A stretch of DNA of 64,000 nt from Takakia lepidozioides. Lineage: Eukaryota; Plantae; Bryophyta. The stretch's first letter is position 1. Each line of letters opens with the position of its first letter. The position numbers and the translations under genes were made by a program. The stretch lies in contig CM060734.1 of the NCBI GenBank assembly GCA_030704615.1, positions 6,138,001-6,202,000 of the forward strand. Reading direction: 5' to 3'. Below, piece by piece: positions 800 to 40,625 of this stretch. The notes under the pieces are model-generated. The model was not told the origin of the DNA and searched no databases. It saw only the letters and a list, made by a program, of their open reading frames with translations.

Positions 800-1140
800 A
801 AAATTGAATGATTTGAAATTTTGCTAGTATGTTCTACATGCCTCTTACATGGACCGGACAAGTATGAGATCAATAAAAAATGGTTCACAGGAGAAACCAA
901 TGGTTACTTGATGTGCCGATTTATGAATGCTTTCAAACTTTGCCATTGCATTGTACATGCCCTCTTAAAGGTACCGGACAAGTATGAGTTCAATTTAAAA
1001 TATTGCAATGGGTGAACCAATGGTATCTTCATTCATCAATTTTTGATTGTTTTTAAACTTTGCCAGTATATTGTACGTGCTGTCAAACAGGTACCGAACA
1101 AGTATGAGGTCATTCAAAAATGGTTCAAAGGATGAACCTC
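800..1140 (-). repeat. Three diverged ~120-bp units, reverse complement of the 121-bp family
   Basis: CCGRACAAGTATGAG recurs at ~854, 974 and 1094. Its reverse complement ATTGATCTCATACTTGTCCGG matches ATTGATCTCATATTACACCGG of the 470-712 unit. Confidence 0.7.
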
Positions 1141-1226
1141 GTATTTCCAAAAATTACGTAGACTATACAGTGGGTTGCACATTTAAGTTTTCGCAACTTG
1201 AGACCTTTGGCCTACTCCTTACGTTT

Positions 1227-3802
1227 CTAGCCTTTATAGTCATCTTCATCTAGATTTATTACTTCGTTGTCGTCATCTCCAGATGTTGATGAAGATGCTC
1301 CGGGTGTAGAGGACGTGCCTCCACCAGTACGGAGAGCTTGAGCCTGGGCTCAAGTGGTCAAAGAGGGACCCAGTGTTGTGTGGTCCACCCTTGCCATCAT
1401 GCGTAGCGTTTTAGGTGAGTGCTGGCTCTCTTCCACATTTGCCAGAGCCGGGTGTGTCGCTCTTGCTACGGCGGCATGCAATTTTTCAATTAAATCCGAT
1501 ATGTTTGGAAGTGGCAAGAACACCCCTGGAATAGGGGCAATTTGGTCACGTCATGTGTTCTGCCAATACTTTAGAACACTCGTGATGGTAGCCTTGAAAT
1601 TGTCCAACACCTTCTCTTGCTGGGGGTCTCTGCGCAACTCTGGAAGAAATGGCCCATCATCCCGACGAGGCACCCAGTACGTCTCATTCATATCCTCCCA
1701 ACGGATGCTAGCGGCCTCCAACTCCCTTAGAAATAGGTCTCTCCCAATCGGTTCGCGATTATATGGGTCGTTTCCAGCTGACACCCACGGATTCTCAGGC
1801 AGTCGGAAGAATCTTTGTGTGGTACAGCTGCATGCCCTCCCAAGTTCCGACAAAAAATCTCCCTTTGGATTGGGTCCCGTATGCCTCTAGTACGCACGGT
1901 TATTTCCCAGTTGGATGTCACCCAAAAGGTCACCGGATCTTTAACCCTGGTTAACGTCTTTGCATCCAAGGCATGCATCTCTCTTGGAGCATCCCATGTC
2001 ATTGTCTCCCCCCAGTGCTGCCAATTTAAAAAATCGTAAGGCGATACATCCAATGGCATGTTGTACCGGTTGTACTCGTATCGCGTGGGCATATTGTCTT
2101 ACAACCCAAACAACTCGTAGAAACGTCGATGGATTGGTCCACGGCAGTCAGGGCATTGGCTGGCTCACATGGCTGCCGATATGAGACATGTGGGATAGAA
2201 CAAATGGCCACATGAACCAAGTATATAGCCTCCCTTCGGTCCATAAGGGTTTAGGCACATTGTGCACACCGTACCATCTGTTACCCATGACGCTGGATTG
2301 CTCTGTGGTATCCATGTCCGTTTATCCTCATTAATGTAGGATGACAGCCTCGGCCTGGTGTCCCACTCCTCATCTACTTCCAAATCCCAGTTTATGCTGT
2401 TATTGGTATCGGAAATTGTATGCACACAGTGCTCAAACATGGCATGCACATCACCCCATGTGGTGAATCCAGTGTACTTCGACGTGAATATATCACGCAT
2501 AATGTCGTGCCTTTGCAAATTAGCATAGATGCTATCTACGCTTCGATTCGACAAACGTGCTGCACGTTGGAGGGAGGACAACACTTCTTCTATCCGTGTT
2601 TCCCGCGATGCTAGATGGCCCACCCATGTCACCCAATTCCGCCAATTCCCCTTCAACCATGGCCACGATCGGATTTGCATGACATTTGAGTACCGATATG
2701 CAACAGCCCTAGCTTGCTCGCGTTCCCCCACAAGCTGCTCTAATTCCTGTTCTTGGGCCGATGTAATTTGCACGGCTGAACATTCCCCAGTTTCCACTAT
2801 GGGGTCCTTCCCTTTTCTTGCCCTCTCCGCCACAAGTCTTTCTTCCTCAACCCTCGCCGGGTCCAGTTCAGACGTTTACACTTCATTCCCATGCCCGATT
2901 GAGTCAACCCTGTCGATGACGCGGTCAATGTCCATTGGTGGCATATTCAAACGCGCCAATATGTCTTGCTCGTTGGTGATTGGCCTCGGGTCCTGAAGCA
3001 CACCGCGTACGCTGTCGAGAGTCCCCAACCCCATTCTTTCCAGCAACTTCGCTATTTGCCACCGTTGCAAATGAACAATGTCCTACAGGTCTTTGATGTG
3101 CTGTTCATGTGCGGCCAACTGTTCCTCCAACGGAGAGCGTACCTCGCCCCCCTCCACCTCAGACGTTGAAGGTCCGGCTGCGGAGACTTGTTGCGGCGTA
3201 TAATCTGGAGGTTGGTCTGCATTTCCTCCTTCTTCCACATCGTCGTTTCCATCCGCCTTTCCTTCTTCTTCCACCTCGTCGTTTCCATCGAACCGTATGA
3301 TGTCCTACCCCTGACATATATACAAGTCTGGGATATCAGAGAACATGTATAGTCTAGTACGTTGTCTCGCAGTGGCAGTTTGTCAATCCACCGGTCGCAA
3401 TAAAATCAACTCTGTGTACAACATGGCCGCAAATAAATATGGGACCTTGTTGTTGACGAGCGGTTGACCCCACAATGTTGTATGTACTTCCTCTGCCCTG
3501 TGGCGGAAATGCGGGTTGGCGCAAGAATACAAACTAGTTTGATTTTGTTTGGTTTGTGGATCATGCCTATCTATGGGCCACAAACGATTTATATGACATC
3601 AGTCCACAAATTTCCTGCAATCACTAAGCGACCGCCGCTGCCCCAACTTCCAAACTTCCCAACCTGGTTCCGCAAGAATGTTGGGGTCATTGTATATGTC
3701 CCAACAAAGTTCGCGCCTGACCCCTTTTGGTTTTTTTTTGGGAGATCCAGGTTCATTATCGTCATCCTTGGGATGACCTCCTCTGTCTTCCTCCTCCGCC
3801 AT
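1227..3802 (-). pseudogene. Intronless ~850-codon accessory gene with N-terminal WPIDRHD domain, coiled coil and RING-H2 finger (copy A)
   Basis: ORFs 3599-3802, 3383-3583, 3083-3274, 2876-3070, 2165-2833 and 1727-2092 share one frame and are separated only by stops. One frameshift near 1830 leads into the 1551-1853 frame, ending at TAG 1227. RING: CTMC…CGHLFYPTC…CPDC. Homologous to 32295-39408. Confidence 0.85.
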
Positions 3803-4136
3803 TTATGGCTTTGGCTTACCCATACTCGACAGGTGTTTGCTAAGAAAAATGCTTTCCCAGCCCTCCTAAATCGTACCTAATCCTACTCCCTAATGAATCC
3901 TCCCCAAGTACTAGAGGCACGTGTCACTCCCTCGGCAGTTATAAGTGATATGACGCAATGTGCAATGAAAAAAACGTGGGTGTTAGAGGAGGGCTTCCCG
4001 GTAGGTACTCAGCATCGATTTCGTAGAATCCAACGACCCAAAATACCTCCCACCCAACCAATAGCACCCCTCTCCACTTGGACTCAATGACAAGGAATGC
4101 AACATCCCATCACCTACCAAGTCCTGGTGTGGAGAA

Positions 4137-4172
4137 AAGTGAGGGAGAGAATGGCCTCCAAGGCCTTATAAG
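4137..4172 (-). promoter_or_regulatory. Putative TATA + Inr core promoter (TATAAG…CCCTCACTT) of the RING gene, copy A
   Basis: The same motif pair precedes all four hAT/RING genes (8422-8451, 26785-26819, 31974-32007). CTCACTT fits the YTCANTYY initiator. Confidence 0.5.
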
Positions 4173-4230
4173 CCCCCCCTCCACACTCGAGGCGTGCGTT
4201 GTCATCATGACTGCGCACGCTAGTAATAGC

Positions 4231-4860
4231 TGCGACCGCGAGCAGAGGTGGTCGCATTTTTATTTTTTTTCTTTATTATGTGCGACCACCAACAGGGGGG
4301 TGGTCGCAGATTTTTTTTTTTTAATCAACAGGGAGGTGGTCGCATAATTTTTCTTTTTTTTAATAGGCGCGACCACCAACAGAGGGGTGGTCGCAGAAAT
4401 TTTGTTAAAAACAAATAGTTGCGATGGTCGCATAATTTTCCGATTTTTTAATATCTACCAACAGTTAGTAGCTCAGTTGGTTAATTGCACTCAGTGCGAC
4501 CCGGACGATTTTGGGGTCAAATCTTACTACTTGATGGGTGTGGTATGGTTCGTGTGTGGTGCCCCATTCCTACGCTTCTTGGCACATAAATGAAAGAAGT
4601 TATTTTCTCCTCTCACTACTAAGGGGCCTGATTTGTGAGCTGTCGCTCCCAGGTTTTTCCCCAAAAAATAAAAATAAAAATAAAAATAAAAAATCTGCGA
4701 CCACCAGCAAGGGTAATTAGTAAATCAGTAAATAGGTGCAACTACCAGCAGGGGGGTGGTCGCAACATTTTTCTTTTATTTTAACAGTTGCGACGACCGC
4801 TACTGGTGGTCACACAATTGTTTTTTAAGAAAAAGGTGCGACCACCAGGAGGTTGGTCCC
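4231..4860. repeat. Array of GCGACCACC-N6/7-GGTGGTCGC palindromes with A/T-tract spacers (interrupted by a SINE)
   Basis: About 9 full or half copies are visible, e.g. GCGACCACCAACAGGGGGGTGGTCGC at ~4282. Confidence 0.85.
4463..4693 (+). mobile_element. tRNA-derived SINE-like element
   Basis: A-box-like TAGCTCAGTTGG at ~4469, degenerate B-box GGGGTCAAATC, and an (AAAAAT)n tail. The 3' body AAATGAAAG…GGGCCTGA is shared with 33335-33537. No clean TSD. Confidence 0.6.
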
Positions 4861-5166: not shown

Positions 5167-8156
5167 CTAATTCCGTCTGGCACGACGATGATGGTATGAT
5201 CTCACGCCTAGTACAAAATCTTCGTCCCCACTCACTTCACCCCCGTTCCCATGATCAGTGCTAGAATCATGATCTCCATCTGTTCTTTCGATTCCAGAGG
5301 CAACTGGCCGTTGGACCTGTAGTCGTCCTCGGAGTACGTTCAGTTGTCTCTCTGGTCGATTTCCACTCCTATCATGAATACCACCTAGGGTATCAGGCCT
5401 GTTCACAGGTCGGTCACCAACAAAAGGTTGCACAATTCTCTGTCGTTTCTGGGCTTGTCCCGAATTTCGTGGTGGCCTTGGAGCAGGTCTCATATGAGAA
5501 AGACTACTCGCATGTACATCAGAGGGGCCGACATGAGAGGAAGGGGCATGAGATGGACCAGCGAGGGTCGAGGGAGCACGGTTCACATGCGGACGTCGTC
5601 GGGCCAGATGAAACGACAATGGCCGGTCATCGTCATCCGATGGTTCGACTTGCAGAAGTCCCGCAGCAGAAGAAGCATCTCCCAGGATCGGAGTAGCGAT
5701 GGAAGGAATTACATGAGGGGGAGAGAGACTAGATGGACCAGCATGGGATGGACCGGCTTGAGAAAGAGAAACATGAGATGGAGCGGGGATGAAGCACGGT
5801 TCACAGGGGCACGATGTCGGTGAAGGAATGACAACGGCCGGTTGTCATCATCCGACAATTCGACCTGCACATCTCCCGCAGTCCATGGAACTCGTGGTGG
5901 GGGAGAGTTGACCTCAACATCATTGTTGAGAATGTGCTCCACTGGGGGAAGGGGGTCTGCAATTGGGATGACATCATGTCGCAGTTCATCAACAACAAGA
6001 TCATCGAAGGATGGATGCATTGCAGCATCATCATCGTTAAATTCGTATGGGTCATGTGGAGGATTGCCCACATCATCGGACCCATCCCAACCGTCAGAGT
6101 CGGAGTCCCTCGCGGTGTCAGTGTCATCATTGCTGCTAGATTGGACCTCTGAGGCAGATTCTTCAGACAACAGATTCTTCTCGTACCATGCAGATGCGTC
6201 ACTTGCTCTCCTCTCTCGCAGTAGCCTACAATTCGTGTAGACATAAACCAATTTGTCAGCCCTGGCAGGATTCAACCTGTTGCGAATCTTGTTGTGAACA
6301 AACAAGTAACTGCTCCAGTTCCACTCACAGGACGAGGCAGAGCACACTTGAGCAAGAATACGCTTTGCAATAGGAGCTAACGTTCTTGCTCCAGCTCCAA
6401 TCAGATCCCACCATTCATGTGGCAACATGTTCATTGCTTTTGGATCCGGCATGTCATGGAAAGGATTCTGCCGATCCGAGAAGCACTGGTACTCGGATAA
6501 CGCTCGCTCTGCCATGTTCAAGGGCGCAAGTTGCTTGATGACCCATACAAGCCCGGCTTTGGCAACCACATCGTCTCTCAAATCCGTATTGTCCAGCAAG
6601 AATGGATTCAGCAAGGCCCCCGCATAATGTAAGTCTGTGCGAACCATCCGTTTGCGGTCGTAAAATGCATCCTCGATCCTTGCCGCCAAATCATCGTCCA
6701 TAGAAAATGGAGAACGCCTCAAGGATTGCACGTGCTTCTCAAGGTTTTCCAATATCAACCATGCTTTATCCATTATTGGTTATTTTCCATCAAACTCCCG
6801 CAAAGCAATCAACACCGGCTCCACCATGTACACAAAATTTGCACATTTCGCCCAGAAATCGTCAGAGAGAATGATTGCGCGGACCCTCTAACTTTTGCTC
6901 AAAGACTTGAACTTACGATAATCGCGTAAGGTGCCCACATATGCATCCCATTGAGGGTCAATGATCACCTGCTCCAGACCCGCCCTCACAGTCACCAGTC
7001 GATCCACCATCAAAAAGTTTGTGGCAAAGCGGGTTTCACCCGGGTTCCTAAGGCTGTATTTGGGTTCATGCTTTCTAAACAATGCCAGAGGGATGTGATG
7101 TGTAAGAATGAACGTCACAACCGACTTTGCCATTTTTACTAGTTGTTTCATCCATGATTTTTTTCCCCAATCCTCCAAAAGGAGATCAAAGATATGAGCA
7201 GCACACCCTTGGTAATATAGATGGGGATATCGTACCATCATTATATCGGCCATATTAACCATGTTAGATGCATTGTCCGTGCACACTTGGACAATTTTTA
7301 TCAGCTCCAATTTTATTGATGTAACTCGTTAACAACCCTGCTTAATAACGTGCATATTTTCTCTCCCCGCTTGTGTCAACAGATCCCAAAAATTGTTCCC
7401 CCGCAGGACAGACCAGCATGACATTGAACAGTGATCGATTAGTAACATAACTCCAACCGTCCGCACATATAGTGCTTCCATATTTCCGGAGAGAATCACC
7501 TGTATTTTCATTCACCTTTTGGGTGAGGTCAGACATAGCCTCTTCTAGCAATCATGTGCGGAGATTGCGATAACTCGGAGGTGTGTATGTGGACTTGGAA
7601 TCGGACGTGGCTTTGATAGCAGCCACAAACGCATGAAGCCTCAAGACATTGAACGGAATATTGGCCTCGTAGAAAAATTGGGCCCACTTCTTATCCAGAG
7701 TCCTCTTTTGCGACAAATTAAGCCTTCTTGCATTGATTGTTGCCTCAATGGTCTGGTCCGTACAAGTGCTAACGTACAATCGGGTGTTGCTCCTGACCCA
7801 CCGGCTTCTCCACGAACAGTAGACGCCTCGCAAAAATCCCCCTGGGTACAACTCTGAAGGACAGTTTGATTCGAACCTGGAGTGTTTGGCTCAGAAGCCG
7901 CGGCCACATCAAGAGACGGTGGGATATTGCCTCCACATTGGGCAAAGTGGGCTTTCACTCGCATGGAGTTTTTTGGGCACAAACAAACCTCTGTATTCTT
8001 CCCATCTCTGTAGCCGAGGTGATATAACATGCGATCTTTGCGACCCGCCAGCTTCAATGCACAAAGATTGCATTGAACACCGTCCTTTTTGTGCGGGTCT
8101 ATGGTGAACCAAGGGATCCACTCCTCCCTCATCCTCACACCCAAAACTCTAACCAC
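5167..8156 (-). pseudogene. hAT transposase, copy A (BED finger, DUF659-like DDE core, hATC dimerisation domain, acidic C-terminal extension)
   Basis: BED-like CNLC…HL…C; catalytic-type motifs TICADGWS, CTDNASNM, CAAH, ETRF and SASSCEWNWS…HNKIRNRL. Broken by stops and frameshifts. Confidence 0.92.
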
Positions 8157-8498
8157 AGACTTAAGGTTGAACGAAGAATACTAGTGTACTTGGTAGATTT
8201 GTCAAGAGCAATAGAAGTTAGAACAAAATGCGATGGCCCAATACTACGGCATCAATCCAAGTGGATCAATGCACCATGTAGTATTGTGTTTTTCGACAAT
8301 TTGCTACAGTGGCTCTGGTGGAAGCCACAACAGCAAAAAATCCGCACCCTCTTCTTGGGCTTACACTCTTGCTCAAGGAAAAGAGAACATTCACTCGCCA
8401 CAAAAGTGTTTGCCACAAAAGAAGTGAGGGGCATTGGGACCACTTTATATACCCTCCAGCCTCCAAGCCTCACACGCTCGACGAATCAGATCCAATGC

Positions 8499-8865
8499 TG
8501 CGACCGCTTCAGGTCGCACGAGGAAGTCGCATGTTATTTAAAAAAAAAACTGTTGCGACCACCCTCATGCTGGTGGTCGCACCTATTAAAAAAAATAAAA
8601 ATGTTGCGTCCACCCCCATGCTCGTGGTCACAGAGATTATTAAATTATTATTATTATTATTATTTGCTGCGACCACCCCCCCTGCTGGTGGTCGCACCTA
8701 TTAAACAAATAAAAATTTTCTACGACCACCACCATGCTGGTGGTCGCACCTATTAAGAAAAAGAAAAATGTTGCAACCACTCCCATGCTCGTGGACACAG
8801 AGAATATATATATTTTTTAAATTTTTATATTTTTTTGCGACCACCCCCCTGCTGGTGGTCGCACC
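8499..8865. repeat. Array of GCGACCACC-N-GGTGGTCGC palindromes upstream of hAT copy A
   Basis: About 7 copies at roughly 52-62 bp spacing with poly-A/T spacers. Confidence 0.85.
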
Positions 8866-10029
8866 TATTAAAAAAACTGAAAAATGCTGATGGAATCCGT
8901 CGCATTTGAGGGATGTTGTGACTATTTTTCATCCTGTGCCGATGAAAAATCGGGCAAATGCCCTAAGCTGTCTCTCCCGCCGTCAGTAGCACAGGCTGTG
9001 CTTCTGAGTGTTATGGTGTCTGCATTTTTGCTATTGTCCTGTTTGCTGCATGGTACCCGTGCTGAGTGACTTCCTGGGGATGCGCAATGGCGGTGTTTGG
9101 TCCCTCTTACATGCAGGAGACAAAGCTGTGAATGCTTTATTGTGTTCCCTCCTCTGGCCTTTAATTTTTGCAGCGGCACCTATGGTGGGAAGTCTCTCTC
9201 CCTCCCCTTCTTAACCTTGCAAGCTTGCTTGTATGCCTCATTGCTTCTTTGCTTTGTTGGAGGCGGCTTTCTGGTGGTAATGGCGCACAACTCTTTTCCG
9301 CAATCGCTCAAGGTGCTTTTGGTGACTAGGGTTCCTTCTGTTTTGTCTTCATCTCTTGCTTTTGAAGTTCTTGGTTGATATCGATGACAAGTGTGGGGAT
9401 CTGTGATTCACCTGGGGTTCCATAATCCTCACTAACCTGTTGGTTTTTGTGGGGGCTTGTGATGGGACCAGGTGAGGATCCCCACTTGCTTTGAATTTTC
9501 TTGAGCATGCAGATGTGGATGTGGGCAGATGAGCCCCTTGTCTTGTTGCGTCTTAATATGGCTGATGACTCCAGCCTCAATTTTGGCCGGTCTGCTCCTG
9601 GTTTGGCATGCTGCCACTTTTGTAAGGCCTGCGTTTTGCTACCATCTACGGGGCATCTCAGTTTCAAAGGCCTGTTTTCTGAAGCCCTGCATCCAACCTT
9701 TACCTTGTCTTTGGATCCCTGACAGCAGAGCCTGTGGATCACTAGGCTAGGTTACAATTTTGTGGCTCCAGAGGTTCTATGTTTTATGGGTAAGGCATCA
9801 GTGGCCTTTTGTTTTATGGGGCGAGGTGGCCTTGAATTTTATGGCAGCAGCCTAGTAAGGCACTGGCCTGCCCATTTTCAGGCCTTCATTTGGTAGATAA
9901 TGGATCATAGTAAAATGCTTTTGCAAACCCTAGCTTTGGCGTCTTGAGAAACGGTGGTGGTAAGCTTTAATGGACTCCAGCCAGTGATTTTGGCTTTGTC
10001 ATGACATCAGGCCCGTGACCTGCAATTTA

Positions 10030-19194: not shown

Positions 19195-19345
19195 GCGACC
19201 GCTTGAATTCGGAGATCTCATGTATTTTTCTTTTTAGTGCGACCACTGGGAATTCGGCGGTCGCATGTGTTGTTTTTAAAACAATTAGTGCGATTGCCAG
19301 AATTCGGTGGTCGCTGCGGAGATCGCCAAAAGTCCGTGGTTGCAT
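19195..19345. repeat. Orphan degenerate GCGACCRC…GAATTC…GYGGTCGC palindromes
   Basis: 3-4 copies related to the hAT-unit arrays; no adjacent gene was recognised. Confidence 0.5.
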
Positions 19346-25267: not shown

Positions 25268-25466
25268 GCCCGGTTATCAGCGTCACGTCCGTCCGTCCGT
25301 CAGCGTCACGTCACGTCAGACCTGACGCTGACGGGACCTCCGTCACGTCAGGTTCGGGGAATATTCTGGTAAAAATAGTACCAGGTAAAATACTGCCACT
25401 TAAACAGCCACGTCGCCGACACGGTGGCGGTGGCAAATACATTTTGAAAATTAACAAAATGAACAC

Positions 25467-26675: not shown

Positions 26676-27055
26676 TAATTTCAAAATTACAACAAATATG
26701 GTTGTACAGCCTTTTTCGGGTGGATGCTATTGGTTCGTCATTTATTCATTTAACTTTCATTTCACTTTCATCCCTCTTGGATCATATATAAGGGAGGAGG
26801 GTCATCAAGCTCCTCACTTCTTTTGGCGTAAACACTTGAGGTTGTTTTGGATGTTCTCTTCCATTGAACGAGAGTGTAGCCCAAGAGGAGGGTGCGCACC
26901 TTTTGCCGTTGTGGCTTCCACCAAAGCCACTTCAGCAGATTGTGTATAAGCTCAACACTACAACCCACATCGATCCACTTGGGTTGCTGACAGGTGTAGA
27001 AATGTTGGGCTATCGCATTGCACTCTACATTCACAACACGTTTATTTATAGGTGA

Positions 27056-30000
27056 TTGTTTTTTGTTGTTTGCATCGCTAGGTCCCAGGGGAGTGGATAT
27101 TGGGTGAAGATGAGGGAGGAATTGAGCCCTTGGTATACGGCAATCTCGAACATTGTCAGTGCCATTGGTAGTGTTGAGTGCTACCTATGTGGATTAAAGC
27201 TTTCTTATCGTAAAGATCGGTTGCTCGCTCACCTCGGCTATAAAGGTGTGAAGAGCGCTGGGGTGGGTTTATGCCCCAAAGCATCTATGTGGGTAAAAAG
27301 CCACTTTGGCCAATGTGGAGGCAATATTCCAATGTCTTTGGATCTGGACATGACCTCTGAGCAGAACACTCTATCTTCCCGTCAGGATGCCCCGATTAGT
27401 ACCCAGGGCGACTCTTGTGAGGCTTCGGGTGTCTTTGGACAAGTGGGTTGTGTCGGAGCAACACCTGCTTCAACACCTCTTTGTACCCTTACATTTCAAC
27501 GAAATAGAGGATTACGGCAGCAATCCATGCAAGAAGGTCTTAACTTGTCTGCGAAAAGACAGTTGGATAAAAAATGGGCGCAGTTTTTCTTCGAGGCCAA
27601 CATATCCTTTAATGTGGCAAGGCTTCCAGCATTTGTTTCTGCCGTTAGAGCAACCTCGGAGTCCAGATCCACGTACGTGCATCTGACTTATCACAATCTC
27701 CGCACATGATTGTTAGAAGACGTCATGACCGAGCTTACCCAAAAGGTCAACGATAGAACGGACGATTGCATCAAAAAATATAGAAGCACTATATGTGCCG
27801 ATGGTTGGAGTTCTGTCACAAACAGACCATTGTTCAATGTCATGCTCATATGTCCAGCTGGGGAACAATTCTTGGGATCGGTCGACACTAGCGGCAAGAA
27901 GAAAGATGGACGTTATCAATGCCAACTATTGACGGATCATCGAACAAGTCGGAAGTGATAGAATCGTGCAAATATGCACAGACAATGCCGCTAACATGAG
28001 AAACACTGCAGACATGTTGTTGGCACGTTATCCACATATGTACTATCAAGGTTATGTTGTTCATATCCTTGACCTCCTTTTGGAAGATTGGGGAAAAAAA
28101 ACAGTGCGTAAAACAACTTGTCAAGCGAGCGAAGACTATTGTGTCGTTCATCCGCACACACCACATCCCTTTGGCAATATATAGGAGGCACGAACCCAAA
28201 TACAGCCTCCGCAATCCAGACGAAACTCGTTTTGCCACTAACTTCTTGATGGTGGATCGGTTGGTGACGGTGAAGAGTAGTCTGGAGCACACCATCATCG
28301 ATCCTCAATGGGATGCGTACACACGGACATTGCGGGACTCCAGAAAAGCCAAGTCATTGGGCAAAAGTCGAAAAGTTCGAAATAACATTCGCAGCGATGA
28401 TTTAGGGAAGAAATATGAAAATTTTGTTTATATGGTTGAGCCGGTGTTAATCGTCTTGCGGGAGTTTGATGGAAAACAACCAGTATTGGGCAAGACATGG
28501 TTACTAATGCAAAATCTTGAGAAGCACGTCCAATCGTTGAGGCATCCTCCTTTCTCCTTGGAACCTGAACTTGCGGACAGTGCCGAGGATGCATTTTACG
28601 ACCGTCGTTCGATGGTTCGAACGGACTTGCATTATGCGGGGGCTTTGCTCAATCCATTCTTACTCGACAATACCATGTTCCGAGACGATGTTGATGCCAA
28701 GGCCGGCCTCGTGCGAGTGCGAGTGCGACTGGCTCCGCCGAACCATGTAGAGAGAGCTATATCCGAATACCAATGCTTCTCAGATCGCCGCGACCCTTTT
28801 GAGGACATGCCGGATCCAAAAGAGCTCAATATGCTGCCACATGAATGGTGGGATCTGATTGGAGCTGGAGCAAGAACATTGGCTCCCATTGCGAAGCGTA
28901 TTTTTGCTCAAGTGTGCTCTGCCTCATCTTGCGAACGCAATTGGAGCAGTTACTCATTTGTTCACAACAAGATTCGCAACAGGTTGAATCCCGCGAGGGC
29001 TGACAAATTAGTGTATGTGTATACCAATTGCCGACTGAGAAGACAGCGGATGATGTTGCAGCATGGTATGAGAGGAATTTGCATTCCGAAGACTTTGCTT
29101 CTGAGGCTGATTCGATTAGTGACGATATTGAGCCTCAGAGAGAATCATCTTAGAGAGAATCATCTGCCTCCGATAGTGAAGATGGATCCGATGATGCTCC
29201 CGAAAATGCGTATGACCCGTTTACATTCACAGAGGAGGATGTTTATATCCAGCCGATCTTTGGTGACCTTCTTGAAGAAATGCGTATTGTTGATGAAGGT
29301 GAAGCTGCAATTGTGTCATCCCCAGAACATGGTCCTCAAAATGAAGTTGGGGTCGACCATCGCCCCCCACTACACGCTGAAGTCACCGGTAGCTTAGGGG
29401 TGATGTACTGTCAGGACCGATCGACGTACGCAACCCTGTTCATACAAACGATGGTGTCGAACCCATTGTACGGTCGACGGGACGGGATCATGCCTCACCG
29501 ATACGACCAGCTCCACCACAATGCCAAAACCGATCCAGCTCCCCATCAACACAACGGACATTAAGGAGCAACAGGGTTGATCTGTTTTCCACATGCATGC
29601 ATCATTCTGCTGCATTGGACCGGACGGAAGTTGAAGCCTCGGATGATGACAACCTGCTACTACAATTCCACCTTAACCAACGTGTTGCGCAGCAGACCCG
29701 TGGTTCCTCACATTCCGGACCATCTAATGTCGATCCATCTCGGGCAGTCCCCCCTCCAGTATCTCCTTCGAGACCACCTTCGATTGCGTCCCAAGTCCAT
29801 AAACGACAGAGAACAATCCAACCTTTTGTAGGCGATCGGCCCACAAACAGGCCACATACCGTAGATGGTATTCAAGACCGGAGTGGGAGTCGACCTCAGA
29901 GAGAACTAAATATCGTTCGAGGTCGTTTGCAGATTCAAAGGCCTGGACATATGAGGTCGGATAGGGAGGACGATTCCAGCACTGATCATGGCAACGGTGG

Positions 30001-30091
30001 TGAAGTCGAGGGTGACCCGGATTTTCAATCCATCGGAGCATTAGGATTAGGGTCTTCTTCGTCCCGCCGTCGAAGCAGTAGAAGGAATTGA
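27056..30091 (+). pseudogene. hAT transposase, copy B
   Basis: CYLC…HL…C BED-like finger, TICADGWS, CTDNAANM, ETRF and SASSCERNWSSYSFVHNKIRNRL. Stops and frameshifts are present. The C-terminal QPFVGDRP…DSSTDHGNGGEV block is shared with copy A. Confidence 0.92.
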
Positions 30092-30365: not shown

Positions 30366-31920
30366 GCGACCGCCAAGGTGGCGGTCGCTTCTAAGAGGTC
30401 TACCCTCCGCGTGGAGCGAGGAATGAGGCGGGGGGGGGGGCATATAAGCCCCCACTCATTCTCCCCTCACTTTCATTATTGGCAGTTTTTGTTTTTACAA
30501 AATGCAACGACCGCCATTTCTGGCGGTCGCTGTAATGGTTTATTTTTAAGATGCAGCGACCGCCATTACTTGCGGTCGCTTTATTTTATTTTATTTTTGG
30601 AAATGGGGCAACCGCCATTACTGGCGGTCGCATTTATTTTAATTATTTTGGAAATGAAGCGACCGCCATTAGCTTTAACAAACGCTCGCGTTCTTCTAGC
30701 ACCGCTGCTACTGCCGGTTCCTCAACGTCTTGGGCGGCCCAACTTGCGGTCGCTTTTATTTTAATTATTTTGGAAATGAAGCAACCGCCTATGTTGGCGG
30801 TCGCTTATTTATTTTAAAGTTTTTGAAAATGAAGCGACCGCCTATGTTGGCGGTCGCTTATTTTTTTTAAATGTTTTGAAAATGATGCGACCGCCTATGC
30901 TGGCGGTCGCTTATTTTTTTTAAATTTTTAAAAAATGAAGCGACCGCCAGCATGGGCGGTCGGTTTTTTTGTTTTAAAGTTTTTGAAAATGAAGCGACCG
31001 CCTATGTTGGCGGTCGCTTATTTATTTTAAAGTTTTTGAAAATAAAGGGACCGCCTATGTTGGCGGTCGCTTATTTATTTTAAAGTTTTTGAAAATGAAG
31101 GGACCGCCTATGTTGGCGGTCGCTTATTTATTTTAAATGTTTTGAAAATGAAGCGACCGCCTATGCTGGCGGTCGCTTATTTATTTTAAATTGTTTTTAA
31201 ATGAAGCGACCGCCTATGTTGGCGGTCGCTTATTTATTTTAAATGTTTTGAAAATGAACCGACCGCCAATGCTGGCGGTCGCTTACTTATTTTTAAAAAA
31301 ATTAAATGAAGCGACCGCCTATGTTGGCGGTCGCTTATTTATTTTAAAGTTTTGGAAAATGAAGCGATCGCCTATGGTGGCGGTCGCTTATTTATTTTAA
31401 ATGTTTTGAAAATGAAGCGACCGCCTATGCCGGCGGTCGCTTATTTATTTTAAATGTTTTTTAAGGAAGCGACCGCCTATGTTGGCGGTCGGTTTTTTTG
31501 TTTTAAAGTTTTTTTTAAGGAAGCGACCGCCTATGTTGGCGGTTGCTTATTTATTTTAAAGTTTTTGAAAATGAAGCGACCGCCTATGTTCGCGGTCGTT
31601 TATTTATTTTAAATGTTTTGAAAATGAAGCGACCACCCATGCTGGCAGTCCCTTATTTATTTTTAATTGTTTTTAAATTAAGCGACCGCCTATGTTGACG
31701 GTCGCTTATTTTTTTTTAAGTTTTTGAAAATGAAGCGACCGCCTATGTTGGAGGTCGGTTTTTTTTTTTTTTTTTTTTTTTTCCGGAAAATGGGGCGACC
31801 GCCAATTCTGGCGGTCGCAATTTTTATTTATTTATTCGGAAAATGGAGCGACCGTCAGTTCTGGCGGTCGCTTATTTTTTTATTTCCGGAAAATCGAACG
31901 TCCGCCAAGTTGGCGGTCGC
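30366..31920. repeat. ~53-bp-period array of GCGACCGCCTATGTTGGCGGTCGC palindromes
   Basis: Roughly 25-28 copies; starts at 30781, 30834, 30887, 30940, 30994 and onward. Confidence 0.95.
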
Positions 31921-32294
31921 TTCTAGAAGATTCGTCGTGCACGTGGCCCGAGAAATGAGAGGGGGGGGGGGGATATAAGCCAAGGGAGGCTTATTCTCCC
32001 CTCACTTCCTCTCCACACAACTTCTGTGTGCGTGGCATTTCATTATTCCACGACACGTAGTCACGTGGAGAAGGAGGCCATCGGTTGGGTGGGGGGTATT
32101 TTTTGCTGCGATTTATGTGAGGTCGTTGCAGAATGCTCCCATAAGCCCTCCTCTGGCTTCCAGGATCATTTTATTCTACAAAATTAGCTTTTAGGATCTA
32201 TTTTCACACCTACTCAAACTTACTTAACGGGAGAAGGGTTTAGAGTTACGTCTTTTTAGAAAACCTCGTTTAGTGTTGTTCCGATTGTTGTAGA

Positions 32295-32867
32295 ATGGTA
32301 GAGGGCCAGGACGATGACGTCATGGAAGAGATGACCCCAATGAACATGGACCGCCCCCTAAGAAAATCAAATGGTCAAGGCAAGACTTGAATTGGGAAGT
32401 ATTTGGTGACCCTAGCATACTAACAGAAGAGGGCTAGGAGGATGTTCCGGAAGAGTTCCGGTGGCCGATGGCGAGATGCAAAAAATTCGTGAAATGGTAC
32501 CACATCAATCGATTGTGGCCTCTGGATAGGCATGACGTGCAAACCCGAAACAATTACGTAGAGTCCAGGTCTTACACAAACTTGCATTTCCAGCATAGGG
32601 CGAATGAGATGCATTGCACATTGTGGGGTCAACCTCTCTTAAAGGGTCAAATCCCGTACACCTTGGCAGCCATGTTGTACGTGGAGGTCATACTCTTGCG
32701 TCCAGTGAATTGACAAACTGCTAGTAGGAGGAACGCAAGGTTGCTATACGATTTGGAGTACATCCTGGACACGTTTGGAATACAACCGGCTGCAACGTTA
32801 GAGGAACAACTAGCGGAAAGAGACCAGCGAATCAGGACCCTGCAGGACCGACTAGACTGGCAAACAC
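32295..32867 (+). pseudogene. RING accessory gene copy B, 5' part (WPLDRHD domain and start of coiled coil)
   Basis: KFVKWYHINRLWPLDRHD…HFQHRANEMHCTLWGQPL…AAMLY.EVILLRPV and LEEQLA align with copy A 3802-3083. Confidence 0.85.
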
Positions 32868-33334
32868 CACTACAACAGATTGCGGCTTTTATGACTCCCA
32901 TGGCTGCGCAATCATGACAGATTTGAGGCAGAAATGCCATTTGAAGTCGTAGATGTCTTTTGAAGTCATAACGCAGGTCCGGGGAAGGCGTATATGCGAT
33001 TGCATGACTCCGGATTCTACGCAACACAGGTCAAACATGTTTGACCACGAATATTGGCTTGGCAGATATGACTACCAGTCACGGTCATACCTACACTGGA
33101 ATGACGTGTACAAATTGCTAGACAGACATATGACTTTATGATTCTCACTCTAATGCATTCTGCCAGATCATCACATGGATGAATCACTACATGACTGCAC
33201 GTGTCGACACATGCTTTTCTGGTTATATATATAATATATCAATATTTATATTTTGAAAAAATGTCGGAGACTCTAACCACTAAAATGATTTTTTTCTTTT
33301 AAAATCAAAGTGCAAAAGATTTGAAAAAAAACAC

Positions 33335-33537
33335 ATTGGCTGGAGGTGCACAGTGTGTCGCCCCGGTGGTTCGGGGTTCAAACCCGCTGCCCTACCCCGT
33401 GTGTGGGATTGTTCGTGACGATATGTTTGGGCGTTGATCGTCCTGTAGGTCTCATGGCCCAAATGAAAGGGGGTTAATTTATCCCCCTCCTAGGGCCTGA
33501 GGCTTCCTTTAAATTAAAAAATAAAAAATAAAAAAAT
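33335..33537 (+). mobile_element. tRNA-derived SINE-like element
   Basis: B-box GGTTCAAACCC and an A-rich tail; 3' body related to 4463-4693. Confidence 0.55.
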
Positions 33538-33679
33538 TGCTTATAGGATTTGCAAGAAGGTTAAAAAACTTAAAAAGTTGCCCATCACGGTAGCCGTGAA
33601 TAGAATTAGAGTGAGCGGGAGGGAGGGAGATAGAGAGAGAGGGCTGGGACTTAGAGCGAGCGAGCGGGAGGGAAGGGAA

Positions 33680-36600
33680 ACATGCATGGGAGGCCGCAGT
33701 TGGAGCAACCTTCGCATCTGAAGCAAGCAACCCTAGAAACGCTAGGGTATGTGTGCGAGGAGGTTTTGGCTGGGAGCTCGTCGTTCTTGGGAGAGTCAGC
33801 TTGGTCTTAGCAAACCGTGTTTCAATCTCTACCCGCTCAGCTACACCGTGGTGGTTCTCACAGACCAATCCGACATTACCTGACTACAGAAACAAGCAGC
33901 ACACTGAAGAGGTCCTCTTGGGTTCATGGTCAGTCAAATCCTCCATGGGTCATGACACAAGGTCGAGGACAATGTGGTGAGGGCACCTTCTTCTTCGACC
34001 TATTTCAGCCTGTTTTGCCCTCTCATCAGACTTGGCCCTTCATTTGCAGCACGGAGCAGAGTTGGCATGAGATTTTTAAAGATCCTTCACGATGGTGCGA
34101 CAACCGCAATGGCAAGGTGTGGCTTTTCCTTAATGTACGATGTGAAGAAGTTTGTCCATCCTGCAAATGTGGGCTGTTGGCTCCTGTTAGTACCATGATT
34201 TGGTATTCTTCCTGATGTTTCAAGGTTCTTGGGAGAGTCAGCTTGGTCTTAGCAGGCCGTGTTTCAATCTCTGCCTGCTCATCTGTACCGTGCTGGTTCT
34301 CACAGACCAATCCGACATTACCTGACTACAAGACACAAGCAGCACACACAAGAGGTCCTTTTGGGTTGATGGTCGGTCAAATCCTCTATGGGTTCTTCTT
34401 CGACTTATTTCAGCCTGTTTTGCCCTCTCATCAGACTCGGCCTTGAGATGCATATTGAATTATGTAAGTTAGCTCGTTGCTTATTGATAAGTAGGGTTGG
34501 GGGTGTTTGTTGGAATGATTGTTGTATGCATGATTTTGTGCAGAGGCATAGATAGCTGAAGGAGCAGGGATAGAGTGTGGAAGAGGGCCAGATTTCAAAC
34601 TCCAGATTATCTATGATTCCCTGTGGAAGGGTAGATACAAGAAACCTGCATGGGTAGATGGTCAATTGGAAGTCGCAGCAGCAGCGGCACAATTGATAAA
34701 AATCAAGCACTGCTAATGAAGGCACCTTCTGAAACACATTTCACCCTATTTTCCCCTCTTATCAGAATCGGCCCTAAATTTTCATGTTCAATTCTGCAAG
34801 TTAGCTGGTTGAGTGAATCTAGTTGGAGTGACTTTGACATGATACTGCCAATGTGACAAGAGTATGCATTGAACCCATTGGTAGCGGGATATTGGGATAT
34901 CTCTTGGCCATGTGCCATCGTCAAAGCTGAAATTGTACTAGTTGTCATTCTGACCACTGCCCTAGTGGACATGTATGCCAAATGTGGGTGCAGCAAGCCT
35001 GATGCAAAGGGAGAGTTCGACAACATGGCTAAATGAGATGTGGTCTTGTGGACTGCCATGATTGTAAGGTGTGTGTAGCATAGGTGTGGGAGTAAGGCTT
35101 TGGAAACCTAAGAACAAATGATGTGGGAAAGGATGAAGCCAAACCAAGTCATGTTCATTTGTGTTTGTTAATATGCATATGCGAGCCTAGCAGCCCTGGG
35201 AAGGGGCCAAGAGGTTCATGGTGACATCATCAAAGCTGGAATTGTACCTGATGTCATTCTGAACATTCCCCTGGTGTACATGTATGTCAAATGCGAGCCT
35301 GGTAGCCCTGGAAAGGACGCAAAGGTCCATTATCAAATCTGGAATTGTACCACTAGATGTCACTCTAAACACTGCCTTGGTGGATATGTATGTCAAATGC
35401 ACGCCTGGCAGCCCTGAAAAAGGGTACAGAGGTCCACGGTGATATTGTCAAAGCTGGTATTGTATCTGATGTGATTCTGAACGTTGCCGTAGTGGACATG
35501 TATGCCAAGGTTGCAGGGTGCAACTACAAGGATACATGGCTGTTTTGATAATATGGCTGAATGAGATGTGGTACCAGCCTAGCCCATAATTGCACTTAAC
35601 TAGAGTAGGCAATGAGTGAAGACGGGGTTTGTGATGACATCGTCCAAGCTGGAATTAAACAAATGTTGTTTTGAACTATGCCCTTGTGGACTTGTATGCC
35701 AAATTGGGGTGCATGGAGGATGATGATCCCAGGATATGCACAACAGCGGCGCGGGATGGAGGCCCTTTGGAGAGGTCTATGAGCAAGTGGTGTGGGAAGG
35801 GATACTGCAGCGCAACCACATCGCGTTTGTTACATTTGCAACATGTGTGCAAGCCTGGCAGCCCTGCAAAATAGCAAAGAGGTTCGTGGTAACATCGTCC
35901 AAGTTGGAATTGTAGTAGACGTCGATCTGAACTTTGACATGATGCCAATGTGACAACAGGAAAGTATCCAGAAACAGGTCACAGAGACGAGGAGAAGTTG
36001 TGGAATGGTGGGACAACCGAGGAAAAAAGGTTAATGCTTGTTAGATTATAGAGGGCAGACGCAATTCAGCATAGGAACTAGTGTGATAAGTTGAGTTGGG
36101 TGTTTCCTAGAACAAATCTAGGCTGTCATTATCAGCTGCAAGGCAAGGAAGTATGCATGATTTGTGCAGAAGCAGTGATAGCTGAAAGAGCAGGGATAGA
36201 GTATGGGTCCAGATTCATCCAAGAGGGCCAGATTTCAAGCACATGATTACCTATGATTACCTGTGGATTTAGCTATAAGAAACCTGCATGGATAGATGGT
36301 GAATTGGAAGCCGCAGGAGTAGCGGCACAATTGATAAAATCAGGCACTGCTAATAAAGGCACCTTCTTCAACACATTTCACCCTGTTTTTCCCTCTTATC
36401 AGAACCGGCCCTAAATTTCAATGTCTGCAAGTTAGCTGGTTGAGTGAATCTAGTTTGGAGTGACTTTGACATGATATTGCCAATGTGACAACAGGAAAGT
36501 ATCGAAAAACAGTTAACGGAGATGAGGGGAAGCTGTGGAATGAATACTTTTCTGACCCCAGTCAATGGTGGGACAACCGAGGCAAAAAGGTAAATGCCTG

Positions 36601-37080
36601 TTGGATTACAGAGAGTAGCAGATGCAATTGAGAATAGGAACTAGTGTGGTAAGTTGAGTTGGGTGTTTGCTGGAATAAATGTAGGCTGTCATTGTCAGCT
36701 GCTAACAGCAATGCAAGGATATATGCATGATCTGTACAGAGGCATGGATAGCTGAAGGAGCAGGGAAAGAGTGTGGGTCAAGATCATCCAAGAAAGCCGG
36801 ATTTCAAGCTCCAGATTACCGATGATTCCCTGTGGAAGGATAGCTACAAGAAACTTGCATGGGTAGATAGTCATGGGTAGATGGTAGATAGTTTGGAGTG
36901 ACTTTGACATGATACTGCCAAAGTGACAATAAAAAAGTATCCATAAACAGGTAACAGAGATGAGGAGAAACTGTGGAATGAACTTTTCTGACCCCAGTCA
37001 ATGGTGGGACAACAGAGGCAAAAAAGTGAATGTCTGTTAGATTACAGAGAGTAGCAGACGCAATTCAGCATAGGCACTAA
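33680..37080 (+). pseudogene. Captured OSB-type PDF-motif + PPR gene fragments (cargo copy 3)
   Basis: WHEIFKDPSRWCDNRNGK|gt, LWNEYFSDPSQWWDNRGKK|gt and HPRGPDFKH…; PPR pieces LVDMYAKCG and MKPNQVMF at ~34900-35920; GA-rich, promoter-like 5' region at 33600-33750. Confidence 0.8.
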
Positions 37081-37644
37081 GGCAAACTCTCCTTCCCCGT
37101 AAGGGTGTGAGCGAATAAATATTTTATCTAAGAATATAATTTCAAAAATTCGTTATTTAATAATGTGCCACTGTCCCATGTTGGTCAAAAGTAATAATAA
37201 TAATAATTATTATTATTATTATTATTATAGTAAATATAATAACAATAAATTAAATCCCCAACACACCCCCCCCCCCCCACAGCGACGCGTGTCAATTGAC
37301 ATGAGGAACCACGTGTCAAAATCACGATGCGACACGTGCTGATGTCTGATTCCCTCCTCTGCAGTCAGGATGGCGTCGCAGTCTGACACGTGGTGTGTTC
37401 TGTAGAAAGCACGTGTCTCTCTTACACAACGGCTGACATGGATCCGTTCAGTCATTCAGTAAAGCCAGCGTGTATGACTACCCCCACAGCTGCTCAGGCA
37501 CCACGTCACAGCTAGGCTGGCGAGTCATATCTGCCATGCCACAACTAACTAGGGTTTTACGACTGCAGAGTCATGAAGTCGTAAATGGCTTTCCAACTTT
37601 GCAGTCATAACACAGAGTCGTAAAAGCCGCAATCTGTTGTAGTG

Positions 37645-39408
37645 CACTGCGCATAGCCAAGTTGGAAGCTAGATTGCAAGACATGCCTCCAAACAATGAA
37701 GGCACTGTTGTCCACAATGAGGTTCGAACAAATGTCGTGGACATGAACGCGGAGTTTGCGATGCCCGATCGTAGTATTGACCTCATCATTCAGGAAGTTA
37801 TGGACGTCCTTGACCCTGTGGCCGATGAAACCATGGTTGAAGAACAGCGAATTGCGGATGAGAGAAGGAGGAAAAGAAAAGAACCGTACTGGAAACCGGG
37901 GAATGCTCAAGGGTCGCCATTCAATCGGAGATGAACCCGATATTAGATGTCGACCGCGTTACAAATGAGCGGGACATTGCCATGGCAACTGCATGGTGCT
38001 TGTCCAAAACGCTGGAGATTCAGGTATGGGTCTCATTGAATGGTGATTGGGAGAATTGGGTACAATGGGCGACCCATTTGGCCTCCAGAGAAGCACGGGT
38101 AGAGCGGGCTCTGTCAGGCTTGCAACGTGTCGCACGCAGGTCAAACCGTAGCGTGGATAGCATTTTTGCCAACATGCAAAGGTATAACGATCTCCGCATC
38201 GCATCAAGGGTGTTCGCCGGGTATACCAATTGGGCAGATGTGGATTCTATGTTCGATCGATGTGAGCACATAATTTCGGGGTCGAACATAAGCATAAACT
38301 GGGAATTGGAGATAGAGGAAGAGTGGGACACCACAACAAGGATGTCCAGCCACATCAAACCGGCCCAGAGGGAGGAGATACCACGAGGCGTTTTGTCATC
38401 ATGGATATCAGATGGCACAGTTTGTTCGATGTGTAGGAATCCATACGGCCCAGAGGGATGTCATGTGCTTGGATCATGTGGACATATGTTCCATCTCACA
38501 TGTCTTATCCCGCAAGCCTTGTGGACGAGCGCTTGCCCAGAATGTCGTACACCAATCCATCGCCGTTTCTATGAGCTGGTGGGCTTGGAGGATCGGATGC
38601 CCATAGGTTTTGAATACAATCGACACAACCTCCCATTGGATGGGCTACCATACACATTTCTGAATTGTGTGCATTGGGGCAAGAGGTATGGGATGCAGAC
38701 AGAGAGATGCATGGCATACATGCCGGAAACCCGGCATATATCAAAGATCCCCAATATTTCTGGGTCACATCTGATTGGGAGATAATCATACGTGCGGGAG
38801 GAATTCGAGATTGGTGGGAGAGATAGCAGTTTTGCCGCAATCTGGGAGGGCATTGGAGTCAAAGAAGGTCTAGGTTTATCCAGCTCCCACAGGTTCCATG
38901 GGTGTCGGAGGAGAACGAATTGTATGACCGACAACCGATTGGGAGACATTTGTTGTTGTCCGAACTGGAAGATGCTATAATATGTCAACGCCGAATGAAT
39001 GATGCGTACGAGGCGGCTTATCGTCAAAACGACACAATGATTAGGGACAGGGCCCGCGAGAGGCAGTTGGAAAGTTTCAAAAGTACCATCAAGGCAGTTG
39101 TAGAAAAATGGAGGCGATTATGGACAGACCGTTATCAACGTGTTTCGGGGACTGTATTGCCGGATGTGGACGGCCTCGTTGCCGATTTGCATGCAGCCCG
39201 AGCATTTGTTCTCGATCCACCTCCGTCACGTCGTGAGAGTGAAGAAGAAAGTCAACTTTCGCCGCGAAGTAGGCGGATGCATGCCAGAATTGCTCACATG
39301 CCATTAGGCCCCTCATTGACCACGAGATCACGGTCACAAGCTCTGGCAATTGGCAGTGCAAATCAGGCCACAACATCAAATTCCACATCCTCGAACAGTT
39401 ACGACTAG
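37645..39408 (+). pseudogene. RING accessory gene copy B, 3' part (RING-H2)
   Basis: CSMC-x14-CGHMFHLTC-x10-CPEC is a C3H2C3 pattern. HLASRE, RSVDSI, INW.LE..EEWDT, PIHRRFYE and LGPSLTT are shared with copy A. Confidence 0.88.
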
Positions 39409-39854
39409 GCTTTTAATGACTGGCAGCGTAGTACATATACAATATGTATTTTTGTTGTACCATGAATATTGTTGGAAAACACAGTGATGGCATTCCGCCA
39501 AGTTTGTATATCATCTATTTTGTTAATACACAATGCACATGTGCGGCACCTGCCAATTTCAATTGCATGAGCAGCGTTTTCTTCACATTTACACTCGTGT
39601 GATGGGGAAGAAGTAGTTCACCCTGTAAACAAATTTACAATGGTGTCATATTTGGTCATGACGTGTATATGGGTATTTGCAATGAACTCCAAAAGCTGGA
39701 GAACAAGGAAAATTGATGTTAACAAATAAGTCATAACGAGTTACGAACGGTCCGGGTCCAAACAAATTTCGCCTCGTCCCTGCGTATTTCATAATCATTT
39801 CGCAAAATCTATGATCTTTCTACGAACATACCCACAAAGTTCTCAGAGCACAAA

Positions 39855-40625
39855 ATAATTTCGATTGATCTCATATTACATTGGGACGTATCAGAGGGTA
39901 CATTGAACACACTGGCCAAGTTTCAAAGCGAACGAAAATCATTTGGATGGGCAACCATCCGTTGGCCCATTGAACGAATTTCGATTGATCTCATATTACT
40001 CTGGGGCCTCTTACATGGCACATTGAACATAATGGCCAAGTCTCAAAGCAAACCAAAATCATTTCGATGGCCAACCATCCATTGAGCCATCGAATGAATT
40101 TCGATTGATCTGATATTAGTCCGGGACCTGTGAGAGGGTGTGAAGGTGTCTGGAACGTGCTGGCAAAGTTTGGAAGCTAACAAAAATGATTTGGATGGGC
40201 AACCATCCGTTCACCCGTTGAATGTATTCTGTTGGAGCTGCTATTGCTTTGGGACCTGTTGAATTGTGTTTCGCGTGCTCACGATTTTTTTTTCATTCCG
40301 TTTTTAAATGGGGCGTGTAAGATGGGCAACCATCCGTTGGCCCATTAAATGAATTTCGATTGATCTCATATTACTCTGGGGCCTCTTACATGGCACATTG
40401 AACATAGTGGCCAAGTCTCAAAGCGAACCAAAATCATTTCGATGGCCAACCATCCGTTGAGCCATTGAATGAATTTTGATTGATCTGATATTAGTCCTGG
40501 ACCTTATACATGGTATGTTGAACATAGTGGCAAAGATTGAAAGCAAACGAAAATCATTTGGATGGGCAACCATTCAATCGCCCATTGAATGAATGGGGTT
40601 TCGTCTTCGATTATACTGGGACCTG
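39855..40625 (+). repeat. ~121-bp tandem repeat, about 6 units
   Basis: ATTTCGATTGATCTCATATTA recurs with ~121-bp spacing; same family as 470-1140. Confidence 0.88.

Follow-up and report, generated by a model that had tools for sequence, protein, structure and literature searches.

The stretch of DNA analyzed here (hereafter, the window) comprises 64,000 nucleotides of the genome of Takakia lepidozioides (Bryophyta; assembly GCA_030704615.1, contig CM060734.1, positions 6,138,001 to 6,202,000). Self-comparison of the window revealed two inverted colinear units located approximately 16 kb apart, namely copy A (~0.8–8.9 kb, minus strand) and copy B (25.3–40.6 kb, plus strand). Both contain, in the same order, a palindrome array, a gene for a transposase of the hAT superfamily, a second palindrome array, a RING-H2 gene of approximately 820 codons and an array of 120-bp tandem repeats. 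Further loci were obtained as stretches of public assemblies, reached from the transposase side and from the RING side, and are designated L001, L002 and so on. The features of the units, including their open reading frames (ORFs), are as follows.

804–1138, minus strand: 120-bp tandem array of copy A, 3' of the RING gene, found with Tandem Repeats Finder (TRF); 64% identical to the array of copy B, inverted.
1333–4182, minus strand: RING-H2 pseudogene of copy A; TATA box near 4168, leader motif at 4137–4145, ATG at 3802, N-terminal domain at 3766–3386, finger at ~2270–2170, C-region to ~1353.
4245–4850, minus strand: palindrome array of copy A, 5' of the RING gene; TRF array at 4245–4453, further arms to 4850, arm variant as in 8540–8885.
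5167–8457, minus strand: hAT transposase pseudogene of copy A; TATA box near 8447, leader motif CCCTCACTT at 8422–8430, tail ORF at 5167–5619; Pfam domain Dimer_Tnp_hAT, tblastn matches to L001 and protein P0001.
8540–8885, minus strand: palindrome array of copy A, 5' of the hAT gene; arms GCGACCACC and GGTGGTCGC, spacer 8–9 nt; TRF and motif map, stem z-score about -5.9.
25428–26698, plus strand: palindrome array of copy B, 5' of the hAT gene; arms GCGACCGCC and GGCGGTCGC, spacer 4–6 nt; TRF and motif map.
26779–30091, plus strand: hAT transposase pseudogene of copy B; TATA box near 26787, DUF659 domain at 27710–27958, dimerisation domain in the ORF 28054–29397 (both from Pfam), tail ORF at 29597–30091.
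30366–31922, plus strand: palindrome array of copy B, 5' of the RING gene; period 53 bp, ~22 units, stem z-score -6.2.
31962–32842, plus strand: promoter and 5' part of the RING gene of copy B with the N-terminal domain; TATA box near 31974, leader motif at 31999–32007.
32850–37830, no strand assigned: interruption of ~5 kb in the RING gene of copy B, containing repeats common to 12750–16643 and 23069–25267 (self-BLAST) together with the gene's own unalignable linker.
37835–39408, plus strand: 3' part of the RING gene of copy B; finger ORF at 37931–38785 and, after a frameshift, C-region ORF at 38902–39408.
39857–40637, plus strand: 120-bp tandem array of copy B, separating the RING gene from the kinase-like gene; ~6 units.
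42074–42991, minus strand: protein-kinase-like pseudogene (Pfam Pkinase), convergent with the RING gene of copy B; probable third gene of the unit.
447–755, plus strand: extra 120-bp array, opposite in orientation to copy A's own array; 87–94% similar to the array of copy B.

An earlier interpretation made without database searches (hereafter, the sequence-only reading) had proposed that two inverted copies share one order, and this was borne out by four colinear inverted blocks. The hAT block (8441–5215 in copy A, 26800–30025 in copy B) showed 68% nucleotide identity over 3.3 kb, with a core of 2.3 kb at 72%. The leader and N-terminal domain of the RING gene (4182–3366 and 31962–32730) and its finger and C-region (2852–1333 and 37835–39344) were both 61% identical, and the 120-bp arrays (1137–809 and 39854–40587) were ~64% identical. 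In the non-coding DNA between the matching blocks, the alignment was lost. The amino acid identity between copies A and B, calculated from trimmed columns, was 54% for the RING protein and 76% for the transposase, in agreement with the earlier statement that the RING protein is the more diverged of the two; the statement that both align over their full length does not hold, because a central linker of ~170 codons in the RING gene could not be aligned. In addition, the array period given as 121 bp was measured as 120 bp by TRF.

The transposase was assigned on the basis of its sequence to a bryophyte clade of the known hAT superfamily. The Pfam domain Dimer_Tnp_hAT (PF05699) was detected in copies B and A with 31.5 and 29.8 bits, respectively (cut-off 21.4), and DUF659 (PF04937) with 42 bits (cut-off 34.7). 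A CERNWS-type motif was found in the transposase of copy B. The search gave 94 homologues with a best identity of 46–48%, and the named ones include proteins of Physcomitrium patens and Calypogeia fissa. The window transposase was colinear with the 776-aa protein P0001 in the tblastn search.

A low-complexity ORF follows directly after the transposase ORF and is kept across lineages: at 29597–30091 and 5167–5619 in the window, at 12318–13304 in L001, at 7503–8288 in L002 and at 8663–9640 in L025. In it, a basic KRKR/KRQR motif precedes (P)MQPF/IQPF, and the ORF has a ratio of nonsynonymous to synonymous substitution rates (dN/dS) of 0.27 between copies A and B. This ORF is either a C-terminal extension of the transposase, reached through a frameshift or an intron, or a small extra gene.

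For the RING-H2 gene, the 284-aa finger ORF was searched exhaustively with HMMER against 1.84 billion representatives and gave only 153 clusters at E ≤ 1e-3 and 45 at 1e-10, and a word-indexed search with the N-terminal domain (N-domain) added only one protein. The members of the family are metagenome or assembly ORFs, and no name was attached by any source to those looked up. In metagenome contigs, the relatives were confined to eight short loci, one of them informative (L014). Full-length members are single ORFs of 787–1154 aa, which supports the earlier description of the RING gene as intronless; the N-domain and the finger of the window gene belong to one ORF, since the full-length homologues carry both in a single one. 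All are built of an N-domain of ~110 aa, a variable and partly coiled-coil linker, the RING-H2 finger and a C-region that is conserved. Across the family, seven of the eight zinc ligands do not vary. The finger of copy B retains all eight ligands in the C3H2C3 pattern with canonical spacing, and that of copy A lacks one His. The Pfam profile zf-RING_2 scored above the threshold in the homologues P0096 (29.4 bits) and P0097 (31.8 bits).

A profile of the finger and C-region matched RING-H2 E3 ubiquitin ligases of solved structure over the finger only, with RNF24 (E = 3e-7) followed by RNF38, EL5 and RNF8. The protein resembles small RING-H2 ligases such as RNF24, RNF38 and rice EL5 in the canonical C3H2C3 spacing (profile E-values from 3e-7 to 1e-4), but the similarity extends over ~45 residues only, and the N-domain, coiled coil and C-region are without detectable relatives outside the transposon-linked family. 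Its sequence characteristics allow us to describe the protein as E3-ligase-like. Modeling of the N-domain led to a confident, predicted helical structure (predicted local distance difference test, pLDDT, above 90 for residues 11–120), and a feature search with this domain returned nothing. Separately, locus L001 contains a 375-aa ORF (248–1375, minus strand) that consists of the N-domain of the RING family followed by a low-complexity tail; the complete RING gene of this locus is ~4 kb away.

Both copies are dead. Intact ORFs are present in neither of them, a decay missed by the sequence-only reading, as was the kinase-like gene. Compared with the uninterrupted 776-aa transposase of L001, the hAT gene of copy A contains at least two frameshifts and three in-frame stops, and that of copy B contains a stop at 27707–27709 and at least two frameshifts, near 27932 and 28097. 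The RING gene of copy A has at least 2–3 frameshifts plus stops, and an invariant zinc ligand is changed from His to Tyr; the RING gene of copy B has one stop, one frameshift and an interruption of ~5.1 kb between the N-domain and the finger (~32.8–37.8 kb). The window copies are thus inactive and, in their own right, ordinary dead members of their family.

The organization upstream of the genes is the same for each gene in both copies: a palindrome array is followed by a TATA box and then by a leader with CCCTCACTT or CTCCTCACTT. The array units are 51–53 bp long, each being centered on a strong palindrome with 9-bp arms. Two arm variants were distinguished, which differ in a compensatory manner, with G/A on one arm and C/T on the other. 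Copy B contains 55 arms of the B type and 3 of the A type, and the arrays of copy A contain 16 of the A type and none of the B type, so that both genes of one copy carry the same variant. In a different part of the window (19190–19320), far from copies A and B, a mini-array of three units carries a third palindrome variant (GCGACC... GAATTC ...GGTCGC), and it could be what is left of a further member of the family or of a non-autonomous derivative.

The interpretation of the 120-bp units as hairpin clusters was dropped, as they showed little structure (z from -0.15 to -2.4). The extra array at 447–755 is nearer to the array of copy B (87–94%) than the adjacent inverted array of copy A is (64%), which suggests either a third fragment of younger age or an exchange between arrays.

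Next to copy B, a gene similar to protein kinases was first matched by translated ORFs of L021 at 42769–42275 on the minus strand. The ORF 42422–42991 gave a Pkinase (PF00069) score of 35.0 bits (cut-off 31.7) and contains the motifs HNDLSPDN and DWG, with the catalytic-loop Asp and the DFG-type Asp. Reading continues past an in-frame stop at 42422–42424. The gene is 35–41% identical to the kinase-like genes beside the hAT/RING pairs in L021 and L022. Because homologues adjoin the pairs in these loci, and because both gene trees described below place L021 as sister to copies A and B, the order in copy B is most likely transposase, RING, 120-bp array and convergent kinase. Judging by this similarity, copy B probably carries the kinase-like gene as a member of the unit, and the unit probably runs beyond position 40625, where the sequence-only reading had ended it, to the pseudogene at 42074–42991. 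The counterpart in copy A would fall to the left of the window start.

Linkage of this hAT clade with the RING family was found in window copies A and B and in the loci L001, L002, L006, L014, L021, L022, L023, L024 and L025. Transposase homologues led to L001, L002, L021, L022 and L023, and RING homologues to L006, L014, L024 and L025. Over ten further loci, the partner gene was located within 10 kb wherever the flank was sufficient, and it was missing from none of the loci with more than ~2.5 kb of flank; the loci without a visible partner (L007–L013 and L015–L020) each have a flank of less than ~2 kb. The layout differed between loci. In L024, the transposase and RING genes stand in tandem as in the window copies, and in L002 they are also in tandem with the RING gene upstream. 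In L001, the RING gene is divergent from the transposase gene. A convergent RING gene downstream of the transposase was found in L022 and L023, and L006 contains an intact RING gene of 1154 aa (P0245) convergent with the transposase, a layout shared with L014. In L021, the kinase-like gene and then the RING gene lie downstream of the transposase, both convergent to it. In L025, a minus-strand ORF stands after the RING gene and shares 74% identity with the ORF behind the transposase of L001. Genes with a DUF7869 domain were also observed a few kb from the hAT/RING units of L021 (6548–7699) and L024 (13611–15482), both in one assembly.

Phylogenetic analysis of eight loci, two of which are close relatives, was based on query-anchored alignments and revealed one and the same topology for the transposase and the RING protein. 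The five internal splits ({A,B}, {A,B,L021}, {L022,L023}, {L006,L022,L023} and {L001,L002}) had supports of 0.885–1.0. Eight taxa give 10,395 unrooted binary topologies, so that identity of the trees by chance is unlikely, although the loci are few. The pairwise identities of the two proteins were correlated (Spearman 0.89), and RING branches were ~2–3 times longer. Co-divergence of the RING protein with the transposase extends down to ~45% transposase identity. The dN/dS ratio between copies A and B was 0.22 for the hAT core (669 codons, dS ~1.0) and 0.27 for the hAT tail; for the RING gene, it was 0.31 in the N-domain and 0.24 in the finger and C-region (dS 1.3–1.8, saturated). The low ratios, together with the unalignable non-coding DNA, indicate that most of the divergence between copies A and B dates from a time when the two genes still functioned. 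Both were co-inherited and diverged under purifying selection while their lineages were active. The checks suggested along with the sequence-only reading, namely co-occurrence, comparison of gene trees and dN/dS, gave the expected results: RING homologues were linked to this hAT in all informative loci, the two topologies were identical for eight loci, and the accessory gene was under selection (0.24–0.31).

Taken together, these characteristics make it quite probable that copies A and B are decayed members of an old composite hAT lineage with its own intronless RING-H2 gene and, in the clade of the window, a kinase-like gene as well. The proposal of an old hAT family with a stably inherited RING gene rather than a chance capture is upheld by linkage, co-divergence, selection and the common design of the cis-elements. 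The transposase and the RING-H2 protein, and probably the kinase-like protein, are inherited as a unit.

Several observations weigh against this reading. Terminal inverted repeats (TIRs) and 8-bp target site duplications (TSDs) were not found in either copy using an inverted-repeat finder, candidate end motifs, local alignments and a systematic scan for an 8-bp TSD with a 12-bp TIR under both the whole-unit and the hAT-only models, in copies that are old and have flanks full of other repeats; the scan gave hits only at chance level or inside arrays. The enclosure of all genes by one pair of ends is therefore putative. The order and orientation of the hAT and RING genes vary by clade (tandem, divergent, convergent), and the adjacency could come partly from neighboring elements in DNA rich in transposable elements (TEs). 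The dN/dS values are biased downward by saturated dS and by the use of alignable in-frame blocks only, although the ratio is still far from 1. The RING ORF of the window scored 22.2 bits against zf-RING_2, below the cut-off of 27.3, and its match to zf-RING_5 was also sub-threshold. Modeling of the finger and C-region gave a pLDDT of only 48, too low for a fold search. The fold of the N-domain had no match in the PDB by Foldseek, the best Z in a wide VIA-align search was 2.8, and the template modeling (TM) score in the ESM Atlas did not exceed 0.38. Finally, the membership of the kinase-like gene in copy B is indicated by homology and position only, and its upstream region is without a palindrome array.

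Several candidate ends were tried and rejected. For the pair 25255/40628, for example, the apparent TSD lay within the 120-bp unit and the left end within a neighboring repeat. The 9-mer CGGTTATCA at 25271, inverted at 43510 and 43597, occurred at chance frequency and had no TSD, and the candidate end CAGGGTTGTCATTTTGGACG of L001 (14068–14049) had no partner. The left edge of copy B adjoins another repeat at 25267 and begins with GACG/CGTCCG-rich DNA resembling the short-repeat arrays of L001 and L002, which hints weakly at a subterminal region. The right end of copy B may be lost, because a long terminal repeat (LTR) retrotransposon begins ~0.7 kb past the kinase-like gene. In L001, 4.7 units of the plant telomere repeat TTTAGGG were observed at 4688–4720, just beyond the short-repeat array that follows the RING gene.

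The presence of only two copies in the window, inverted, ~16 kb apart and with the same internal order, could also be explained by a segmental duplication, inverted and occurring only once, of a region where a hAT element stood by chance beside an unrelated host RING gene. Neutral decay after such a duplication is excluded by dN/dS values of 0.22–0.31 for both genes at dS of at least 1 and by the identical tree topologies. Moreover, the non-coding DNA is unalignable, the same pair is linked at no fewer than nine other loci in several assemblies, and the palindrome variants are specific to a copy and common to both of its genes. A one-off duplication, which the sequence-only reading had named as one of the cases that would overturn it, is contradicted by the selection and congruence data and is considered extremely improbable. 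DNA transposons do capture host fragments and plant genomes are rich in RING-H2 domains, so it was also considered that one hAT family had captured a host RING gene recently or by chance, without function for the element (Pack-type transduplication). The RING family, however, has a conserved N-domain and C-region of its own, the members found are unnamed metagenome or assembly ORFs, the gene has its own promoter of the element's design, and it co-diverged with the transposase over eight loci under purifying selection (dN/dS 0.24–0.31), which leaves capture with very little probability.

The remaining alternative assumes that "array, hAT, array" is the autonomous element and that the RING gene, together with the kinase-like gene, is a separate non-autonomous unit that depends on this hAT clade for mobilisation in trans and frequently inserts beside it. 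It would account for the arrays on both sides of the transposase gene in both copies and for the different orientation of the RING gene relative to the hAT gene among loci. Yet the second array directly adjoins the TATA box and leader of the RING gene and is not an element end, so "array, hAT, array" does not delimit an element lacking the RING gene. Furthermore, the order and spacing in copies A and B are identical despite dS of at least 1, the outer edges of the arrays yielded no TIR/TSD pair, and a strict co-phylogeny is not expected for units that move independently. This explanation is considered rather unlikely, and the composite lineage remains the preferred interpretation.

For the composite lineage, a mechanism can be proposed whose steps are given in order of decreasing confidence. 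The transposase would mobilise the unit as a whole in a cut-and-paste manner. The palindrome arrays are putative binding sites for a dimeric DNA-binding protein encoded by the element, and such a protein, by analogy with VANC, might activate the genes of its own family only or shield them from silencing. The RING and kinase-like proteins might ubiquitinate and phosphorylate host proteins, such as factors of silencing, chromatin or repair, to the benefit of the element. That the RING and kinase-like proteins serve the element is implied by their retention under purifying selection through deep divergence, with the gene order reshuffled and the linkage never lost. It is conceivable, though doubtful, that this bryophyte hAT clade possesses a virus-like host-manipulation module, with E3-ligase-like and kinase-like proteins and with palindrome arrays as self-recognition sites, which would target host proteins of silencing or repair for modification or activate its own family only.

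Canonical plant hAT elements (Ac/Ds, Tam3, Tag1; DUF659-type) encode a transposase only. The lineage described here shares with them the DUF659 RNase-H-like region and the C-terminal dimerisation domain of the transposase. Unlike these elements of 3–5 kb, it is at least 13 kb long, contains a RING-H2 gene of 800–1150 aa and, in one clade, a kinase-like gene, and has a separate promoter before each gene. The accessory proteins of other superfamilies, namely the Myb-like ORF of PIF/Harbinger and TNPA/TNPD of CACTA, are DNA-binding partners of the transposase. The stable inheritance of a second element-encoded protein together with the transposase is common to these systems and the present one, but here the superfamily is hAT and the conserved modules are enzyme-like (E3-ligase-like and kinase-like). 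The VANDAL elements with their VANC proteins are similar in being DNA transposons with extra genes and in having family-specific short motifs as tandem arrays beside the genes, which differ between relatives; the targets of VANC are tandem repeats that differ between related TEs (PMC5735166). VANDAL elements, in contrast, are Mutator-like and belong to a different superfamily, the accessory proteins here are RING-H2 and kinase-like, and the role of the arrays is proposed by analogy.

Other parts of the window are also occupied by repeats. The LTR retrotransposon (43724–56890) has direct repeats of 2.6 kb (43724–46339 and 54285–56890) that are 90% identical, and its ORFs at 49768–50940 contain RVT_1 and RT_RNaseH domains. 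Its repeats end in GTCAGG...CCGG(T/C)TA, not in TG...CA, and no flanking duplication was seen. An unclassified repeat family (12750–16643, 23069–25267 and 33783–37223) consists of ~600-bp units in both orientations, with 100/200-bp tandem arrays at 15923–16643 and 35172–35508; one copy adjoins the left edge of copy B and another, inverted relative to it, interrupts the RING gene of copy B. The ORFs of this family had no Pfam match, and the ORFs 57188–57718, 58577–60010 and 60582–61133 had none at E ≤ 0.001.

hAT elements are textbook one-gene cut-and-paste transposons, and no published account of a hAT element carrying RING, kinase or accessory ORFs emerged from the literature searches. The divergence of copies A and B, seen side by side, provides evidence for constraint, co-inheritance and co-evolving cis-arrays. 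For annotation, RING and kinase ORFs of this kind in bryophyte genomes are transposon genes and not host genes. Public assemblies contain intact ORFs such as the 1154-aa P0245 beside the transposase of L006. The compensatory changes of the palindromes between sublineages point to testable self-recognition and manipulation of host proteins by a DNA transposon. If the proposed host-manipulation module exists, it would be the first counter-defence system of an enzymatic kind to be described for a cut-and-paste DNA transposon.

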